This document shows, one piece after another, positions 43,195 through 53,527 of a stretch of DNA of 64,000 nt. The notes under the pieces were generated by a model, which saw nothing but the letters and a program-made list of their open reading frames with translations, searched no databases and was not told the origin of the DNA. Both the position numbers and the translations under genes were made by a program. Within the stretch, counting starts at the first letter, position 1, and every line of letters starts with the position of its first letter. The stretch comes from Hyaloraphidium curvatum SAG 235-1 (taxonomy: Eukaryota > Fungi > Monoblepharomycota), in contig JAIVFI010000039.1 of NCBI GenBank assembly GCA_025558095.1, positions 248,001 to 312,000 of the forward strand, read 5' to 3'.

Positions 43195-44225
43195 ATGCGT
43201 ACCATCCTCTTTCTTGGCCTCCTCCTGGCCATCGCCTTGCTGCTCCTGACGCCGGACGATGCCGACGGCGCCACCACGCGCCGGAAATCCTCGGCGCGGC
43301 GGCGCACCACGTCCCGAAGACGTACGACAACCCGGCGCCGGACCACCACGCGGCGGAAGCGGACGACGGCGGCCCCATCGCCTACCTGGCTCCGCCCGCG
43401 GCCGCATCAATACAGCTGGAACTACCAGCTGAGCGTCGATGCCGCAAATCCCCTCAACACGACGCTTCCGGGCGTGGACCTTTATGTCATTGACGTGTTC
43501 GACACCCCGCCCGCCGCCGTCGCCGCGGCAAAATCCCGCGCCACAAAGGTCATCTGCTACTTTTCCGCCGGCTCCTACGAGGATTGGCGCCCCGACAAGG
43601 CGTCCTTCCCGGCCGCCGTCGTCGGCGAGGGCCTGGACGGCTGGCCGGGCGAGCGCTGGCTCGACGTCCGGCGTCTGGACGTGCTCCGCCCCATCATGGC
43701 GTCGCGTATCGCGCTGGCGAAACAGAAGGGGTGCGATGGGGTGGACCCCGACAACGTCGACGCGGCGTTCCAGGGCGAGACGCCGGCGCAGGTGCTTGCC
43801 AACACCGGGTTCCCACTGACGGCGGCGCACCAGCTGGCCTACAATCGGATGCTCGCGGACGAGGCGCACAAACTTGGTCTGGCGGTCGGGCTGAAGAATT
43901 GCATCAGCCTGATACCGCAGCTTGTGCCTCATTTTGACTTCGGTGAGTCTCCGACCGCTCCATTGTTGCTGGCGGCTCCCTCATCCCTCCCACGACGACA
44001 GCTGTCAACGAGCAATGCCTCGACTACAGCGAGTGCGGCTCCTATGCCCCTTTCCTCTCGGCGAACAAGGCCGTCCTCGCGGTGATGTACGACTGGACCG
44101 ACGCGAACAAGGGCTCGGTGTGCCGCTCGGCGAACTCGTTCGGACTGGACGCGCTGTTGAAGCGGCAGGATCAGATGCTGACGGCGCTTCCGAGGGTGGA
44201 TTGCTGGAGGGAGTTTCAGAGCTAA
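43195..44225 (+). CDS. Secreted GH114 endo-alpha-1,4-polygalactosaminidase (Ega3-like), one intron
   Basis: Signal peptide, WNYQL, ICYFSAGSYEDWRPD, KGCDGVDPDNVD, GLKN, AVNEQC. Confidence 0.9.
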
Positions 44226-45870: not shown

Positions 45871-47880
45871 TCACCCTCCCTTCTTCCACGCCTCGACGAT
45901 CCACGTGAGCCCCACCGCGAACCCGTACCTGACCTCCATCGCCCTCTCCACCGCCCTCTTGTTCCCCTCGGAATTCCCCACGTCGTGGAACGCAAACACC
46001 GTCCCCCTGTCCGACCGCAGGAACCTCCCCCAGTCCTTTGCATGCGCCGCGATCTCCTCCTCCCCATGCGCCGCGTCGGTCCACACGAGCTCGTACCCCA
46101 GGTCCGGCACCGTCTCCCCCGCCACCACCGTGACGTCTTCGAGCACCCCCGCGCGGGCGAGCCCCGAGCGGAGGTAGGACAGCTGCCCGCCGTGCTTTTC
46201 GAAGGTCTCCCGGAACGTCGGAGGGTGCGTGCGGTACAGCTCCCCCGGGACCGAGACCAGCCTGCGCCCGCGGCTGTGGAGCGTGGCCTGCGACGCGGGG
46301 TCCGTGGCGTTGTCGTACGACCAGTAGTACGGCGCGTGCGATTCGGGGAAGCCGGATGCGGATTGCATCGTGTCCGCGCCCACCGGGAACAGATCCGCAG
46401 TGACGAATGTCCGTCCCGGTACGCCCGATGCCTGGATGCCCTTTGCGATGCACACGGTGGAGCGCCCGCGGTACGGGCCCTGCTCGTAGACGTTGCCCCG
46501 TGTGCGGCGGGCGAGGATGAAGAGGAGGCAGCACTCGCTGTCGAGCGTCCAGCCCTCGGGGAGCAGCGAGGCAAAGGGGCGGAAGCAGGTGGGCATGCCG
46601 GCGTCGAGCTCGCGGTCGATTTCGGCGCGGATGGCGCGGAGGTCGAAGCGGGGGGGGTCCGATGCGTCAGGTGCTGCCGGGCGGTTGCCGTCGCCGATCG
46701 GCGCCGCAGGAGCCTCCGCAGCCTTTGTGTAGGCCGTTGCGTCCACAATGCTGTCCGTCGCCGCATTGCGGTCCTCCGCTGCGCTACGGTCCTCACTCGG
46801 ACCCTGCTCTGCAGCGTCCGGGTACCATTTCCGCAGCACCCTCCGCACGAGCTCGTCGACGTGGCCTTCTTCCTCCTCCCTCCTCCTTTTCAGGTGATCC
46901 CTGACCAGGCCCAGAGTGCTCTTTGCCGACGGCAGATCCTCCTCACCGTACGCGATGCCGTACTTGTAGTCATCCTCGGCCGTCGCCAGCCACTCCTCCT
47001 TGGTCACCCCCGGCACCTTTTCCACGACCGCCGGACACCCCGCCGACGCCGCCTCCACGGCCCGGAAAGTCAGCGGATCCCGAGTTACAAAGAGCTCCGC
47101 GCGCGAAAACAGCTCCAGCCGGCGGCGCTTGCCCTCGTCCTTGGAGAGCAGGAAGGCGCCGCGCGCGCGGGCCTCGGCCGCGGGGTCGACCTTGGGGATC
47201 GCCACGGTGCGGTTGCCGGCGCGCCAGCGGCTCTTGCGGGCAAAGTAGATGGTCCCCTTTCGGGGGCGGCGGTCGCCGCCGGGCAGGCCGCGGTAGTGGT
47301 CGGGGTAGTAGTCCGTCACGCGGAGGTGGAAGGGGTCCTTGTGCGCCAGCTCCGCGCACACGCCCATGGCGTAGCACGCGATCAGGTCCTCCGACGCGTC
47401 GTAGGATGCCGCATCCGGGCCGCTGTTGGCGCCCGGAAAATACAGCATCCAGCGCACCACGCGCTGCGCCTGGAGCGGGTTGCCGAAGATGATCTCGGGG
47501 TACACGACCACGCCGTCGCGCGGGTCGATCCACGCGGGCAGCCCCGGCGTCGCGTAGCCGGAGTTTGTGGGACTGCCAGCGGACTGGCCCCACGGCACGA
47601 TGAATGCGGCCGACGGCTCGCCGCGCGCCGAGAAGCGCCTGTTGAGGCGGTCGACCAGCGCGTGCAGCACGGTTGTGCCGCCCGAGGACTCGGTGTACGG
47701 CGGCGCGACAACCGCGAAGAAGAGGCCGCCGGGGAGGGCGGCCGGGCGGGCGCCGGGCGGGGTTGGCGGGGGAGCCGCGGCGGCGCGAGGCGGGGGCAGC
47801 CGGGGGACGCGGCCCCACGCCGCGAGGGCGAGCAGCAGCGCGAGTGCCAGAGAGGCGAGCAGCACCCGCAGTCCAGCCAT
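45871..47880 (-). CDS. Signal-anchored WavQ-like glycosyltransferase-like domain fused to a class I SAM methyltransferase (Methyltransf_24-like), intronless
   Basis: N-terminal TM segment; SGGTTVLHALVDRLN, VVYPEI..GNPL.A.RVVRWML, DPLTF..VEAA..GC, KYGIAYG; then EQGPYRGRST, VWTDAAH, FAFHD. Confidence 0.75.
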   Translation of the reverse strand: MAGLRVLLASLALALLLALAAWGRVPRLPPPRAAAAPPPTPPGARPAALPGGLFFAVVAPPYTESSGGTTVLHALVDRLNRRFSARGEPSAAFIVPWGQSAGSPTNSGYATPGLPAWIDPRDGVVVYPEIIFGNPLQAQRVVRWMLYFPGANSGPDAASYDASEDLIACYAMGVCAELAHKDPFHLRVTDYYPDHYRGLPGGDRRPRKGTIYFARKSRWRAGNRTVAIPKVDPAAEARARGAFLLSKDEGKRRRLELFSRAELFVTRDPLTFRAVEAASAGCPAVVEKVPGVTKEEWLATAEDDYKYGIAYGEEDLPSAKSTLGLVRDHLKRRREEEEGHVDELVRRVLRKWYPDAAEQGPSEDRSAAEDRNAATDSIVDATAYTKAAEAPAAPIGDGNRPAAPDASDPPRFDLRAIRAEIDRELDAGMPTCFRPFASLLPEGWTLDSECCLLFILARRTRGNVYEQGPYRGRSTVCIAKGIQASGVPGRTFVTADLFPVGADTMQSASGFPESHAPYYWSYDNATDPASQATLHSRGRRLVSVPGELYRTHPPTFRETFEKHGGQLSYLRSGLARAGVLEDVTVVAGETVPDLGYELVWTDAAHGEEEIAAHAKDWGRFLRSDRGTVFAFHDVGNSEGNKRAVERAMEVRYGFAVGLTWIVEAWKKGG

Positions 47881-48013
47881 CCTCCCGCGCCCACTCCACT
47901 CGCTGGTCGCCGGGGTGACTCCCCATCCCTTGCTGTCCCTCCCTGTCCCCTGCATCCCGGCCCCCGCCCGATCCCCCAAACCCCAAACACACACTCCTCC
48001 CCATCGCCCCGCC

Positions 48014-48098
48014 ATGGCCGGGCTGCGGTGCGCATCCGACGCATTCGACTCGCGCCTGTTCGGCTTCGGCGTGGCGCGCCTCGCCGTGCTCCGCGGCG
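48014..48098 (+). pseudogene. Detached N-terminus of the WecD-WecE fusion gene
   Basis: MAGLRCASDAFDSRLFGFGVARL matches the WecD-type N-terminal motif (W/F-DS-xx-FG-xxx-ARL). It ends in CCGCGGCG, in frame with 50497. Confidence 0.7.
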
Positions 48099-48219
48099 GA
48101 GGCAGCATTCGGCGTCGAGCGTCCAGCCCTCGGGGAGCAGCGAGGCAAAGGGGCGGAAGCAGGTGGGCATGCCGGCGTCGAGCTCGCGGTCGATTTCGGC
48201 GCGGATGGCGCGGAGGTCG
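48098..48219 (-). repeat. 122-bp direct duplicate of 46524-46645 (start of the methyltransferase domain)
   Basis: Near-identical sequence; encodes DAECCL instead of DSECCL. Confidence 0.95.
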
Positions 48220-48429
48220 GTTTAGTCAGAACTTTCACTCAAAAGCCCAACTATAGTGAAGGCTATGCACATTGTTGCGGAGCTACCAGCGAATCCCGGG
48301 CGGCCTGGTTGAAGCATGGCGCGTCGTACATCCAATCGAAGGCAAGGAAAGTGTGCGGTGCTGAGCCAGTTGCCGCTGACGTTGGTGTAGGCCGCTTCCT
48401 GCAGCCGCGGCAGAAGCTCGGGAATGACG

Positions 48430-49185
48430 AGCCGCATCGATGGCCGTCGCGTGGGCCCAGCGGCTGATGGAATGCCTCGCGTCTGCATTGGCACGGCAGG
48501 GATCAGCCTCGGAGCACCGGCATCCGCCCCGGCGCGACGCACCGTCGACGGCCTTTGCGGCCAGCAGCAGCGACACGGCCGTCACCGCGTAGTGCGACCC
48601 CACCGCGAAGCTCGCCTCGGTCCTGACCCTCCGCCTCAGTTCCCGCACGTAATCCATCGCCCGCGACACCACGTACGCCGACGGCCTCGCGTGCGCGAGG
48701 AGCCGCCCCAGGTACGCGGCGAAGGCGGGCTGGTCGGAGGAAAAGAGCGTCGGGTGCCTCGCGTGCGCCCCCGCGGCGGAGGGGGGGTAGCACGATGCGT
48801 AGACGGAGGAGATGATGATGGAGACGAGGAGGTCGGCGGGGTAGGTGTCGGGAGGGGGGTGCGTGCAGCACGCGGGGGGGTGCGAGCGCGAGCGGAGGTG
48901 CGAGGGGGTTGCGTGGGGCGGTGGGTGGAGGGCGGGGAGCGAAGCGAGCGCGGGTGCATCGCGTACAGGGGGTTGCGCCGGGGGAGGGAAGGGGGAGGCG
49001 TCCTCCGAGTCGTCGTCCGAGTCGACGCGCGGGGGGGAAGCGGGGTCTGGGCGCCGCAGCCAGCCCGGTGCGGGCGAGAAGCACGTGCTGTCCGGCGAGC
49101 TCCCCTCCTCCGAGGCCCCCTCGCCCCCCTCAGAAAGTCCCAGTCGCCGACGGCGGTGGCCGATGACGACGTCGAGCGGCAGCAC
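48430..49185 (-). pseudogene. 3'-truncated Pcl/Pho80-type cyclin fragment
   Basis: FAAYLGRLLAHAR...AMDYVREL...SLLLAAKAVD-DARHSISRWA, then an abrupt switch before the conserved E..FL helix. Confidence 0.65.
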
Positions 49186-49380
49186 TCCGCGTCGCCGGGG
49201 AGCGGCTGCCGGCCCCCGTGAGCGGCGGACCCGGCCTCGCGCGCCAGCAGCTGCCTGGCCTGTGGCGCGGAAGGCAGCCCGCGCAAGCGGCGGAAGCGCA
49301 TGAGCTCGCGCTTCCAGCGCTCCACCCGCGGGCGGGGTTCGCCTGGCACGGGCACAAGCGGCGCGCCGCGCGGGGTGCTG

Positions 49381-49780
49381 ATGGAGCGCGGCGCGGTGTT
49401 CCGCGCGTACCCACGGCGCTCGAGCTGCGGCGGCTGCGCGGCGCGCTCGTCGCGGGGTTCTACGCGCTGCCGGCCGGCGACCGCGAGCGGTGGCACGCGC
49501 TGCTCTTCGTGCCGCCCGCCTCGGACGCGCCCTCGCCCTACGCAGGCGCCGTGTTCCGCCTGCTGTTCGCGCTGCCCGACGACGGCCCGATCGCTGCGAC
49601 CGTGCTCAGCATGCCGTTCTTCCACCCGCTGGCGGACCCAGGCTCGGGGCGGCTGCACCTGCCGCCAAGGCTGCTGCCAGAGGGGGCGGCGCACCTGGAC
49701 GACTTGGGGCGGGTGTTGCGGCGCGCGTTTTCGGACGACTTTCTGGAGCAGCTGGAGGAGGGGGATTTGCCTTTTTCGGG
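49381..49780 (+). pseudogene. UBC/UEV (AKTIP-like) fragment with an early frameshift
   Basis: GFYALP...WHALLFV...SPYAGAVFRL...FHPLADP.SGRL. No catalytic Cys. Confidence 0.6.
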
Positions 49781-49839
49781 TGTGTGTGACCTCCGTTTGT
49801 GTTTGTGGCCAGGCGTCGTCTGATCGCCCTCGCGTCCAG

Positions 49840-50086
49840 CTCCCCGAAGCCCTTCGACCGCCACGACTGGTTCTTCGACCGCTGCGGCAAAAAGACGGTC
49901 CGCTACGTGATCGACTACTACGCCGGCCCGGACGAGGCACCCGGGCAGCCGACCTTCAGCGTGGACGTGCGGCCGGCGCTGGATTCGGCGGGGGCCGTGG
50001 CGGACAGGTTCAAGGTCGCCTTTGGGGGGCTGTACGACGGGTTCAGGGCAAAGTGGGCGGGGGCACCGACGTCCGAGTCGAAGTAG
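49840..50086 (+). pseudogene. Orphan last exon of cytochrome c/c1 heme lyase
   Basis: [13 protein letters not shown]...VRYVIDYY...DVRPALDS, preceded by a CTGAT...CAG acceptor. No 5' exons in the window. Confidence 0.85.
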
Positions 50087-50496
50087 GGGACGAGGAGGCC
50101 GCCTCGGGTACATTTCGGCGCGGAGCCGCGCCGGTTATTCGTGATTCACCATACAGTGCTTTCCATGTTTCCCATTGCGCGTCCCGTTCCGCCGCGCAGG
50201 TATCATTCCAGTCCCCTCACGTGCGCCACGACCACCATCGCGTCGTCCACGCGGATCCAGCCCCCGAAAAACAGCTCCGAGTTGCGCTCCCGGTCCGCCA
50301 ACCGTTTTGCCAGCTTCTCCAAAAGCCGGCCGTTGGTCCCCCCGCACCGCGTCCGCACCGCCGTCGGCCCGTCCTCCTCCTCCTCCTCGCCATCCGGACT
50401 ACCGGATCCGGGGGCGTGCCTCGCGGCAGCCGGCAACCCCCTCTCGTCCGCCGCGAACTCGGCCTCCCCGATCCGGTCCCACTCTTCGCCAGCCCA

Positions 50497-52348
50497 CCGC
50501 GGCGCCGCTCCGGGGGATATTTCGGACGCATTGAGGGACGCAATGGCCGACGGCGCTCGCCTCGTCTACATCTTCGGCAGCGAGGAGGCGGCAACCGACG
50601 ACGGCGGTCCCTCGCTGCCGGGATTCGCCCTGGACCGCCGCACCGTGTACGAGGCACGCACGGGGGACCTCGACTGGGCGGCGCTCGAAAAGGACGCCGT
50701 CGGCGCAGCACCGGGCATCTCCTTCGCATCGGCAGCCGCCGACGCCCCTCCGGCCGGCATCGAGGAGCTCGCCTTCGCCGCCGGCGAATGGTCGCGCTAC
50801 AAAACCGATCCATGGCTGCCCGCCGCGTGCTTCCGCAAGATGTACGGCGCCTTCCTGGCCAACTCCCTCAACAGGTCCATCGCCGACGAGGTGCTGGTCG
50901 CCGCCGCACCGTGCGGCAAGCTCTGCGGCCTCATCTCGTTCGGCGTCGACGGCACCGAGGGCAAGGTCGTCCTCCTGGCCGTCGATCCCGACCGCCGCCG
51001 CGCCGGCATCGGCAAGGCCCTCCTCGCCCGCGCCCTCCTCTGGGCGCGCGACCACGGCGCCGCCACCATCAGGGTCGTCTCGCAGGGCCGCTCCTTCCGC
51101 CTTCCCTCGCAGGCCCTGTACGAGCGCGCGGGCCTGCGCATCGCCTCGCGCACGCCCGTGCACCACGCCTGGCTGCCGCAGCACATCCTCGAGCCCGCCG
51201 CCGTGCGCGCCGACGTCGGTCCGATCCCGTTCCTCCGCCCGTACGCGGCCGGCGGGGAGCTGGCCCTGGCCGCGCGCGCGATCGGGTCGCCCGACTCGGC
51301 CGAGTTCCAATCCCGCTGCGTCGCGTTCCTCTCCTCCATGCTCGGCCCCGGCTGCGAAGCCGTGCACCTCACCCCCTCGTGCACCGCGGCCCTGGAGCTC
51401 GCCGCCCTCTGCGCAGACCTGGCCCCGGGCGACGAGGTGATCGTCCCGGCATTCACCTTCCCCACCACCGCCTCGCCGTTCGCCCTCCGCGGCGCCGTCC
51501 CCGTCTTTGTCGACGTGCAGCCCGCCACCCTCAACATCGATCCCGCGCTGGCCGAGGCCGCCGTCACCCCCCGCACCCGTGCGATCGTCGCCGTGCACTA
51601 CGCCGGCGTCCCCTGCGACATGGACGCCCTCGCATCCATCGCCGCCCGCAACGACCTGCTCCTGATCGAGGACGCCGCGCAGGCCCTCTTCTCCACCTAC
51701 AAGGGCCGCCCCGCGGGCTCCCTCGGCGACGCCGCCGCCTTCTCCTTCCACAGGACCAAGAACGTCTCGTGCGGCGAGGGCGGCGCGCTGGCCCTCCGCC
51801 GCGCGGGGATGGCCGCCGGCGCGGCCGAGGCGTGGGACAAGGGCACCGACCGCCGCGAGTTCCTCGCCGGGCGCGCGGAGACGTACCAATGGACGCGGCT
51901 GGGGTCGTCGTACGCGGTGCCCGAGACGTCGGCGGCGGTGCTGCTCGCGCAGCTGGAGCGCGGGGAGGCCGTGTGCGAGGAGAGGAGGGGTGTGTGCGGG
52001 AGGTACGCCGAGGGGCTGGCCGATCTGGTGGCCGTGGGGAGGTTCGCGGCATGCGAAGTGCCGGAGTGGTGCGAGCCCAACGGTCACATCTTCTGGATAA
52101 TGCTTCCCTCGGCGGAGGAGCGGGCGCGATACGAAAGGGTGCTGGCCGAGGCGGGCGTGTCGACGGCGCGGCACTACCAGCCGCTACACCTGTCGCCGGC
52201 GGGGCAGAGGTACGGCCGCGCGCACGGCGCGCTGCCCGTCGCGGAGAGGGCGGCGGAGGCGCTGCTGAGGCTGCCGGTGTGGCCGGGGATGAGCAGGGCA
52301 GAGGTGGCGCACGTGATCGCCGCGGTGAGGCGGGCGGCGGGGGCGTAG
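50497..52348 (+). CDS. Fusion of a WecD/RffC-like GNAT acetyltransferase and a WecE/RffA dTDP-4-amino-4,6-dideoxyhexose aminotransferase, intronless; N-terminus displaced
   Basis: GNAT: SRYKTDP...MYGAF..NS, LLAVDPDRRRAGIGKAL, VVSQ, LYERAG. Aminotransferase: LTPSCTAALE, PGDEVIVP, VHYAGVPCDMD, IEDAAQ, SFHRTKN (PLP lysine), KGTDR, GSSY, HYQPLH. Confidence 0.9.
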
Positions 52349-52396
52349 ATCCCCAGGCGGGGAGCAGGATGCGTTGGCGAGGGTACGAGGCGATGG

Positions 52397-53527
52397 TTAT
52401 GGGGGTCGCTGCCCCGTAGATCGATTTCCGCTCTTGCGCCGCGCGGAATGGGCGATCGTCCGGCCTTCCTTCTGTTCTTGTGCGGGTCCTGCTTTGTCCG
52501 AGTACCACTTCTGCAGCACCCTCCGCACAAACTCGTCCAGGTGGGCGTCCTCCGCCCGCCTCCTCTTCATGAGCTGCTCCTTCACCATGTTGAGCGTGCT
52601 TTTCGCCCAGGGGAGGTCCTCCTCGCCGTACGCGATCCCGTACTTGAACTCGTCCTCCGCGGTCGCCAACCACTCCTCCTTAGTCACCCCGGGCACCTTT
52701 TCCACGACAGCCGGGCAACCAACCGAAGCCGCTTCCACGGCGCGGTAGGTCAGCGGGTCCCGCGTGACGAACTTGGCGGCGCGCGAAAACAGCTCCAGCC
52801 TCCTCCGCTTCCCCTCGTGCGGGTCCAGCAGGAAGGCGCCACGCGCGCGGGCCTCGGCCGCGGGATCGATTTCGGGGAGCGTCACGGTGCGGTTGCCGGC
52901 GCGCCAGCCCGTCTTGCGGGCAAAGTAGATGGTCCCCTTGCGCGGCCGGTCGTCGCTCGGCAGGCCCCGCGAATAGTCGGGGTAGTGATCCGACACGCGG
53001 AGGTAGACGGGGTCCTTGTGCGCGAGCTCGGAGCAGAAGCCGGCCATGTAGCAGGCGACCATGTCCTCCCACCCATCGTAAGCCGCCGCCTGCGGGCCGC
53101 CGTTGAGCCCCGGGAAGTAGAGCATCCAGCGCACCACGCGCGGCGCCTTCAGTGGGTTGCCCTCGATGATCTCGGGGTACACCACCACGCCCTTTGCGGG
53201 ATCCAGCCACGGGGGCAGCAGCGGCGACGCGTAGCCGGGATTCGTGGCGTGCCCGCCGCCCCACGGCACCACGAACGCCGCCGAGGGCTCGCCGCGCGCC
53301 GAGTAACGCCTGTTGAGCCTGTCGACCAGCGCGTGCAGCACCGTGGTGCCGCCCGAGGACTCGGAGTACGGCGGCGCGACGACTGCGAAGAAGAGGTCCG
53401 GAGGAAGCGACGGCGGGGAGGGCGGGCAGTCGGCGCCCACTGGCGCCCGGCCGAGCACGGCAAATCCAGTGACTGCAGCCGCGACCGCTGCGGCGCCCAT
53501 GAGCGGGCGGAACCACGGCGGCGTCAT
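52397..53527 (-). CDS. Second WavQ-like glycosyltransferase-like paralog, without the methyltransferase domain
   Basis: Colinear and highly similar to the 46830-47730 region, with its own N-terminal TM segment. Confidence 0.75.
   Translation of the reverse strand: MTPPWFRPLMGAAAVAAAVTGFAVLGRAPVGADCPPSPPSLPPDLFFAVVAPPYSESSGGTTVLHALVDRLNRRYSARGEPSAAFVVPWGGGHATNPGYASPLLPPWLDPAKGVVVYPEIIEGNPLKAPRVVRWMLYFPGLNGGPQAAAYDGWEDMVACYMAGFCSELAHKDPVYLRVSDHYPDYSRGLPSDDRPRKGTIYFARKTGWRAGNRTVTLPEIDPAAEARARGAFLLDPHEGKRRRLELFSRAAKFVTRDPLTYRAVEAASVGCPAVVEKVPGVTKEEWLATAEDEFKYGIAYGEEDLPWAKSTLNMVKEQLMKRRRAEDAHLDEFVRRVLQKWYSDKAGPAQEQKEGRTIAHSARRKSGNRSTGQRPP

Follow-up and report, generated by a model that had tools for sequence, protein, structure and literature searches.

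A candidate host-adapted gene cluster for rare amino-sugar glycosylation in the fungus Hyaloraphidium curvatum

We analysed a 64,000-nucleotide stretch of the genome of Hyaloraphidium curvatum SAG 235-1 (assembly GCA_025558095.1, contig JAIVFI010000039.1, positions 248,001 to 312,000 of the forward strand), hereafter called the window. At 45.9 to 53.5 kb lie three genes: a fusion of a WecD-like GNAT N-acetyltransferase with a WecE-type sugar 4-aminotransferase, and on either side of it two paralogous WavQ-like genes, g1 and g3, of which g1 also carries an O-methyltransferase-like domain. On balance, we think that the three genes probably form a native, host-adapted cluster for a rare amino-sugar glycosylation pathway.

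In the pathway that we propose, nucleoside diphosphate (NDP)-glucose 4,6-dehydratases unlinked to the cluster would supply NDP-4-keto-6-deoxyglucose, with uridine diphosphate (UDP) as the probable carrier. The pyridoxal phosphate (PLP)-dependent WecE-type domain of the fusion enzyme, which is predicted to be cytosolic, would aminate C4, and the WecD-like domain would then acetylate the amine. This should yield an NDP-4-acetamido-4,6-dideoxyhexose, which would be nearest to 4-acetamido-4,6-dideoxygalactose (Fuc4NAc) because the aminotransferase is close to WecE. A nucleotide-sugar transporter, none of which is encoded in the window, would bring this product into the endoplasmic reticulum or Golgi. 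There, the two WavQ-family proteins, which have type II anchors and a glycosyltransferase B (GT-B) fold, would move the sugar onto glycoprotein or wall glycans, and the luminal methyltransferase domain of g1 would methylate the sugar or a neighbouring residue.

The gene cluster

The region from 45.9 to 53.5 kb of the window has a GC content of 0.69-0.76 and is rich in spurious long open reading frames (ORFs), of which three are real. The genes and their domains are as follows.

45871-47880, minus strand: g1, a single open frame that starts with the ATG at 47880 and encodes 669 aa, with an anchor, a WavQ-like GT-B domain, a linker and a C-terminal O-methyltransferase-like domain
47812-47880, minus strand: hydrophobic N-terminal signal anchor of g1 (Kyte-Doolittle mean 2.29 over 19 residues from residue 1)
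46783-47724, minus strand: WavQ-like GT-B domain of g1, a 314-aa alignment with g3 and the same family profile
45874-46671, minus strand: domain of g1 resembling cation-dependent class I S-adenosylmethionine (SAM) O-methyltransferases, Pfam core at 45979-46485
50483-52348, plus strand: GNAT(WecD-like)-WecE fusion, homologous span to the stop codon, start uncertain (50165 or 50543)
50666-51148, plus strand: WecD-like N-acetyltransferase domain of the fusion, with NF008212 and TIGR02382 as the best GNAT families
51224-52333, plus strand: WecE-type PLP sugar 4-aminotransferase domain of the fusion (NF008687; E. coli WecE 4piw)
52397-53527, minus strand: g3, 376 aa, type II anchor at about 53450-53506 and WavQ-like GT-B domain at about 52499-53395, identical to the public gene call P0001

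The homologous span of each gene is one unbroken frame with no intron. The fusion gene and g3 are convergent, with 48 bp between their stop codons. Between g1 and the fusion lies the fragment of a last exon for a haem lyase (49841-50014), so that the three genes do not form an unbroken run.

An earlier note, made from the letters of the window, had described a GNAT-WecE fusion between two paralogous WavQ-like genes, one fused to a SAM methyltransferase, and had placed both transferases in the secretory pathway by their N-terminal signal anchors. Each of these identifications held in our analysis. The note had also pointed out that the window lacks the upstream dehydratase, and we found this enzyme encoded elsewhere in the genome. 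On the points on which the note had staked its reading, we found a glycosyltransferase fold, encoded dehydratases and a eukaryotic contig of 485 kb.

The fusion enzyme

The ORF at 50141-52348 (plus strand) matched the Pfam families Acetyltransf_1 (E 6e-10) and DegT_DnrJ_EryC1 (E 2e-83). Its aminotransferase domain scored 403.5 bits with the NCBIfam equivalog NF008687 (dTDP-4-amino-4,6-dideoxygalactose transaminase), which has a cut-off of 375 bits, and spanned positions 2-372 of the 375 in that profile; it missed the cut-off of the NCBIfam model TIGR02379 (358.6 bits, cut-off 434.85). Over their whole length, the C-terminal 368 residues aligned with the solved structure of E. coli WecE (4piw/4zah; E 1.6e-90, 308 bits). 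By comparison, ArnB, QdtB and perosamine synthases reached about 170 bits and DesI 148 bits. The lysine that forms the Schiff base with PLP is kept, as the FSFH-x-TKN motif of the fusion aligns with E. coli WecE (4piw).

For the N-terminal domain, the WecD models ranked best among the GNAT families of NCBIfam (E 5e-12 and 3e-10), and the match to TIGR02382 spanned positions 27-167. When we built a profile from 14 fusion N-termini, its top PDB chain was E. coli WecD (2fs5/2ft0), with E 1.3e-12 over chain residues 98-229. At the level of sequence, we regard the identification of the protein as a WecD-like GNAT joined to a WecE-type aminotransferase as solid. A hydrophobic N-terminus is absent from the fusion (Kyte-Doolittle maximum 0.82).

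The 5' end of the gene is unsettled. Homology to related fusions begins at 50483, the candidate ATG codons are at 50165 and 50543, and a public gene call begins at 50840. Starting at 50165 would add a 106-residue extension (50165-50482) that is rich in arginine, serine and proline and nearly free of acidic residues. From its composition this extension may be an organellar presequence, which it resembles; equally, the segment may be a 5' untranslated region.

In E. coli, WecE is the dTDP-4-keto-6-deoxyglucose 4-aminotransferase and WecD is the dTDP-fucosamine N-acetyltransferase. The WecE/WecD pair of enterobacterial common antigen synthesis thus has the same two catalytic domains and the same order of reactions as the fusion. 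Several features set H. curvatum apart from the E. coli system. Both activities are joined in one polypeptide, with the GNAT first and the aminotransferase second, and the gene is eukaryotic, with host codon usage. RmlA was not found in the genome, and the carrier is probably UDP, not deoxythymidine diphosphate (dTDP). Finally, Pfam reported no match to WecF (GT56), and the putative transferase is a type II-anchored GT-B protein of the WavQ family.

Sugar supply and predicted configuration of the product

Two loci for 4,6-dehydratases were found outside the window, at C1:1122886-1123610 and C21:552595-553315. Both are split by introns, and their exons, searched one by one and without a joined gene model, matched TIGR01181 best. 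The thymidylyltransferase RmlA was not found in the genome, where the best match had E 5e-9 and was far below the cut-off. The carrier is therefore likely to be UDP rather than dTDP, as in the eukaryotic and Mimivirus route to rhamnose and viosamine.

The genome holds eight DegT-type genes in total, fusions included. The seven outside the cluster are as follows.

C24:606464-607501, C5:903061-905274, C20:342878-343912, C29:586661-587761, and on C4, C37 and C21: further DegT-type genes, several of them fusions

Their fusion partners are the 3,4-ketoisomerase FdtA (FdtA+DegT), an epimerase/dehydratase of the short-chain dehydrogenase/reductase (SDR) type (DegT+SDR) and a hexapeptide acetyltransferase (hexapeptide+DegT). 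From this gene content, H. curvatum appears able to make a wide range of rare amino-deoxy sugars.

A close functional counterpart is the Mimivirus cluster for UDP-2-O-methyl-N-acetyl-viosamine (UDP-2-O-methyl-Vio4NAc), in which R141 is the dehydratase, L136 the aminotransferase, L142 an acetyltransferase with a glycosyltransferase (GT), and R132 the methyltransferase (PMC10117803). Both the virus and, by prediction, the fungus have a 4,6-dehydratase, a PLP 4-aminotransferase, a fused N-acetyltransferase, a SAM- and metal-dependent sugar O-methyltransferase and GTs, and the substrate is likely to be UDP-linked in both. The two sets differ in their protein families and in how the domains are joined. 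The virus joins its acetyltransferase to a GT, has GTs of the GT2 type and keeps the methyltransferase as a separate protein. In H. curvatum, by contrast, the GNAT is fused to the aminotransferase and the methyltransferase to a GT-B domain, the dehydratase is unlinked and has introns, and the aminotransferase is WecE-like, which predicts the galacto configuration.

These parallels bear on the configuration at C4. If H. curvatum followed Mimivirus, its product would have the gluco configuration (N-acetyl-viosamine, Vio4NAc/Qui4NAc) and be 2-O-methylated, instead of having the galacto configuration of Fuc4NAc. The functional correspondence with R141, L136, L142 and R132 (PMC10117803), the probable UDP-linked substrate in a genome without RmlA, and the frequency of WavQ-like genes in giant-virus contigs all point in that direction. 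Yet no other sugar aminotransferase, whether solved or modelled, comes nearly as close to the enzyme of the fungus as WecE, whose equivalog cut-off it passes, and the acetyltransferase is WecD-like, of neither the L142 nor the hexapeptide type. We regard a gluco product as unlikely, if well worth bearing in mind, and prefer a sugar of the Fuc4NAc type.

The flanking genes

The proteins encoded by g1 and g3 are 75% identical over 314 aa, and their DNA is 78-85% identical. The ratio of nonsynonymous to synonymous substitution rates (dN/dS) is 0.28 over 301 codons, indicating that both copies are under purifying selection. The hydrophobic 19-mers at their N-termini have Kyte-Doolittle means of 2.29 (g1) and 1.79 (g3). 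Six WavQ-like paralogues are present in the genome, on four contigs, and all six have a signal anchor.

The WavQ-like domain had no Pfam or NCBIfam match even at E 10, and no sequence match in the PDB. A word-index search returned six relatives only; an HMMER profile search collected 2995 representative proteins, mostly of about 300 aa, some of which are fused to GT2, GT9 or TPR domains. The AlphaFold2 (AF2) model of g3, with a predicted local distance difference test score (pLDDT) of 75.5, showed a GT-B fold with two Rossmann-like domains. In an exhaustive comparison with VIA-align, g3 matched 8xsh with Z 14.4 over 265 residues, and the matches covered residues 40-344. All of the top 50 VIA-align chains were GT-B enzymes, and 49 of the 50 were glycosyltransferases. 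Foldseek likewise matched the model to GT-B glycosyltransferases with probability 1.0. Pyruvyltransferase and epimerase folds were among the weaker structural matches.

A structural search of the ESM Atlas with g3 placed a 'WavQ family protein' first (TM-score 0.62/0.76, 272 residues aligned) and 'WavQ' third, both names having been given to the clusters automatically. Three residues, K205, D257 and G270, are invariant in the alignment A1, which also keeps an Asp257-x7-Glu arrangement. Read from the sequence without superposition, Lys205 and Asp257-x7-Glu resemble the donor-binding motif of GT4 enzymes. Structure matches in BFVD included Mimivirus L138; these reflected generic GT-B similarity only, and we claim no specific homology to L138.

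Proteins of the WavQ family, which are about 300 aa long and occur in bacterial polysaccharide loci, phages and giant viruses, were thus the best structural matches of the fungal proteins. The fungal members differ from the rest of the family in that they carry N-terminal anchors, one of them has a fused methyltransferase, and the six paralogues form a clade of their own.

The C-terminal 266 residues of g1 matched the Pfam family Methyltransf_24 (E 3.7e-4, covering profile positions 2-105 of 105) with 21.8 bits, below the gathering threshold of 26.3. Language-model features in the ESM Atlas gave a score of 0.96 to Methyltransf_24/TylF/CmcI clusters. Using the AF2 model of this domain (pLDDT 64), Foldseek found MeT1 of M. 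hassiacum first (E 7e-7, probability 1.0), with Rv0187, CCoAOMT-like enzymes and MycF as further matches. Sequences of this family are very rare: the word-index search returned a single relative, and the genome holds one paralogue (C29). The motifs E-x-G-x-x-x-G-x-S, TADLF, D-x-A-H and FAFHD are kept in three sequences: g1, P0283 and the C29 paralogue.

These conserved stretches include a glycine-rich SAM motif and acidic and histidine motifs. The nearest known enzymes are MeT1, a sugar O-methyltransferase, and the cation-dependent sugar O-methyltransferases of the MycF/TylF type. The g1 domain differs from those enzymes in being only 15-20% identical to them, in an insertion of about 70 residues, in its fusion to a GT-B domain and in its predicted luminal location. 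Because it is C-terminal to the type II anchor and the GT-B domain, the methyltransferase is predicted to be luminal and to act either once the sugar has been transferred or on a substrate that has been imported.

Gene neighbourhoods of the WavQ-like family

Genes for amino-sugar synthesis recur beside WavQ-like genes in several kinds of genome. In an O-antigen-type locus of Marinobacter, the WavQ-like gene lies between Wzx and a GT2 gene, with DegT and WbqC nearby. In two giant-virus-like contigs, which carry MutS7 and a Pox_A22-like resolvase, the WavQ-like gene abuts an RmlD-like SDR gene, and DegT, a nucleotidyltransferase (NTP transferase) and a methyltransferase are near. Among 57 WavQ-like loci from IMG/VR (many from giant-virus metagenome-assembled genomes, GVMAGs; GC 0.23-0.43; many near-duplicates), a DegT gene was found within 8 kb in 30 and a 4,6-dehydratase gene in 23.

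Eukaryote-like contigs show a similar association. Contig L093, which encodes the closest relative of the fungal clade (P0069), holds two DegT genes and a TPT transporter. Another contig, with CIA30 and LSM genes, encodes DegT, a PglD-like acetyltransferase, a nucleotide-sugar transporter and a WavQ-like protein within 5 kb. Nothing could be learned from the genomic contexts of P0008, P0003 and P0169. As a reading of gene content, these neighbourhoods of WavQ-like, DegT and transporter genes support a route of cytosolic synthesis, import by a transporter and luminal transfer. They also lend weight to the proposal of the earlier note that the set makes and transfers an N-acetylated 4-amino-4,6-dideoxyhexose, for which we infer the C4 configuration, the carrier and the acceptor.

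Some further observations were made on these contigs. The arrangement of dehydratase, WavQ-like and DegT genes recurs in giant-virus contigs (viral loci L033-L089 and the P0010 contig), and identity between the viral dehydratases and the fungal dehydratase exon reaches 58%. In contig L093 and in a virus-like contig alike, DegT has a thiamine pyrophosphate (TPP)-dependent enzyme as its neighbour.

Expression

One public run, X1, was the only one found to contain the stretch. The comparison took in 6,000 bases, with g1 from 47601 upward. The contigs of X1 cover the fusion gene and g3, at 50455-52202 and 52280-53526, with no mismatches; most intergenic bins are empty, and depth varies between genes. 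On these grounds X1 looks like a transcriptome, and expression of the cluster is suggested but not proven.

Depth in X1 was 156-669 at 48439-48831 and 49610-49751, compared with 22-104 on the genes. The contigs on 48543-48831 had 3-8 mismatches each, and the one on 49610-49751 had none. This pattern suggests a repeated or highly expressed intergenic element.

Weighing the proposed pathway

Several points weigh against the pathway as we draw it. The proposal is built on sequence and predicted structure. The GNAT domain fell below the cut-offs of both WecD models (TIGR02382 and NF008212), with 46.1 and 40.1 bits where 219 and 195 are required. About 35 residues at the start of related fusions had no counterpart upstream of 50483 when we searched for the WecD motif with tblastn, and no upstream exon was placed. 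The AF2 model of the methyltransferase is only moderate at its pLDDT of 64. No nucleotide-sugar transporter was found in the window, which has no homologue of the L093 transporter. The RNA label of X1 is a guess, and its contigs cannot prove transcription. Many of the viral loci are near-duplicates, so that the figure of 30 in 57 overstates their independence.

The remaining objections concern the WavQ-like proteins. A literature search on WavQ gave nothing relevant and turned up no characterised member of the family, so the donor specificity is drawn from gene neighbourhood only. GT-B folds are also known in proteins that are not glycosyltransferases, such as pyruvyltransferases and 2-epimerases, and these folds were seen among the weaker matches. 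The fusion might make an N-acetylated 4-amino-4,6-dideoxy sugar while its WavQ-like neighbours use another donor or are GT-B proteins of another class, such as pyruvyl- or phosphotransferases, their adjacency being coincidental or only loosely functional. It agrees with this alternative that no DegT gene lies near four of the six paralogues, and that DegT was not found within 8 kb in 27 of the 57 viral loci. Against it stand the independent neighbourhoods with DegT and acetyltransferase genes, which are seen in giant-virus contigs, two further contigs of eukaryotic appearance and a bacterium, as well as the predominance of glycosyltransferases among the VIA-align matches and the conserved acidic residues and lysine that resemble a GT4 motif. 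We consider this alternative quite improbable, and transfer of the amino sugar by g1 and g3 remains the reading that we prefer.

Origin of the genes

The earlier note had stressed that the genes are intronless and GC-rich, unlike their neighbours, and had taken them for a horizontally acquired module. The lack of introns was confirmed, but the GC content is not distinctive. GC at third codon positions (GC3) is 0.875-0.926 in the three genes and 0.84-0.97 in intron-containing host genes (dehydratase exons 0.92-0.97, galE 0.91, GH114 0.84). With codon usage like that of the host, neither the high GC nor the lack of introns points to a recent foreign source, and we dropped high GC as a marker of one.

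In a tree of 120 WecE domains, a branch with SH-aLRT 96 separates 30 sequences from the other 90. The 30 comprise all 28 GNAT-WecE fusions, the stand-alone paralogue of the fungus and an MMETSP fragment, with the window protein as a long basal branch; the 90 are stand-alone enzymes of bacterial type. Named members of the fusion clade come from an ochromonad, EukProt and MMETSP, and the fusion was found in many uncultured eukaryotes. Two fusion-bearing contigs are eukaryotic by gene content, one having TRM10, a split BCS1 and WKF and the other GT92 and a TPT transporter; here, the TPT nucleotide-sugar transporter and the Golgi-type GT92 adjoin the related fusion. A WavQ-like gene is absent from contigs L026 and L027, which carry related fusions. 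The stand-alone WecE paralogue (P0181, L019, at C21:391976-393160) has a GC3 of only 0.58, though it groups with the eukaryotic fusion clade.

For the WavQ-like family, the six H. curvatum paralogues and one environmental protein (P0069) form one clade with support 97. It is nested in a group of 22 sequences that holds none of the 53 viral sequences.

The joint arrival of a module was not borne out; the fusion groups with eukaryotic fusions, and the paralogues form their own clade with one environmental sequence. The ultimate origin of both families is of bacterial or viral type. Judged from the trees, neither the fusion nor the WavQ-like family is a recent transfer, and both have resided and diversified in eukaryotes for a long time.

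It is very improbable that the segment is foreign DNA with no working fungal pathway, whether through contamination, through a transfer from bacteria in the very recent past or as an endogenous giant-virus element: the intron-free cluster beside split host dehydratases and neighbours, and the ultimate origin of the families, would fit such a source, but the 485-kb contig carries eukaryotic genes (the haem-lyase fragment and a GH114 exon), GC3 is host-like and far from the GC of 0.23-0.43 of the viral loci, the anchors are of the eukaryotic type II, the paralogues are spread over four contigs and under purifying selection, and both trees place the genes with eukaryotic or non-viral sequences. 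Contamination is ruled out for practical purposes by the eukaryotic contig and the host-like GC3, and we rejected an endogenous giant-virus element as well.

Significance

The 4-amino-4,6-dideoxyhexoses, such as Fuc4NAc and viosamine, are treated as bacterial sugars. Our literature search found no prior description of Fuc4NAc or viosamine in eukaryotes, or of Hyaloraphidium glycosyltransferases. So far, reports of the N-acetylated 4-amino-4,6-dideoxy sugar class come only from bacteria and giant viruses; viosamine itself had been encountered only in bacteria, according to the Mimivirus work (PMC10117803). If our reading is correct, an intact fungal cluster, kept by purifying selection and adapted to secretion, would extend these sugars to cellular eukaryotes, and the presence of the same fusion in many environmental eukaryotic contigs points the same way. 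Compared with the known sets, the novelty would lie in the different fusions, the different transferase family and the adaptation of the whole to the eukaryotic secretory pathway.

The reading would also give the WavQ-like GT-B family, with its roughly 3000 representatives in bacteria, phages and giant viruses, a first testable function. It would make a concrete link between the glycosylation toolkits of hosts and giant viruses. With seven other DegT-type genes in the genome, the surface glycans of H. curvatum may be unusually bacteria-like, which bears on the walls of early-diverging fungi and their recognition.

We tentatively suggest a wider generalization, which is plausible but short of probable. 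Hyaloraphidium and the mostly uncultured eukaryotes that bear the fusion may make secretory glycans containing a 4-acetamido-4,6-dideoxyhexose, possibly O-methylated. They would do so by means of a eukaryote-specific fusion, transporters and WavQ-type GT-B proteins that are shared with the dehydratase-GT-aminotransferase modules of giant viruses. Such hosts could then be a source or a sink of the genes for glycosylating giant-virus fibrils.

Other features of the locus

The assembly of H. curvatum, a monoblepharid zoosporic fungus, comprises 31.9 Mb in 55 contigs, and the H. curvatum protein P0181 is 100% identical to its locus C21:391976-393160. Two further features lie within the region of the cluster.

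49841-50014, plus strand: C-terminal fragment of a cytochrome c/c1 haem lyase (PF01265 positions 236-297 of 299, E 8e-23)
48098-48219, strand not assigned: copy of a 122-nt repeat, 98% identical to 46524-46645 (g1 linker and start of the methyltransferase), just upstream of g1

The haem-lyase fragment is ordinary eukaryotic sequence outside the sugar module. Only the last 60 or so residues of the lyase are detectable there, and a fuller copy is present at C27:457905-458884. The fragment could be a pseudo-exon, or the end of a second haem lyase whose N-terminus has diverged. At 43195-44085 (plus strand), 2 kb from the cluster, is an exon of GH114 (endo-alpha-1,4-polygalactosaminidase type; profile positions 1-168 of 231) with a signal peptide, making it another secreted glycan enzyme. 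The copy of the 122-nt direct repeat, detected by repeat search and protein match, has an internal stop at the protein level and reflects either a recent small duplication or a quirk of the assembly.

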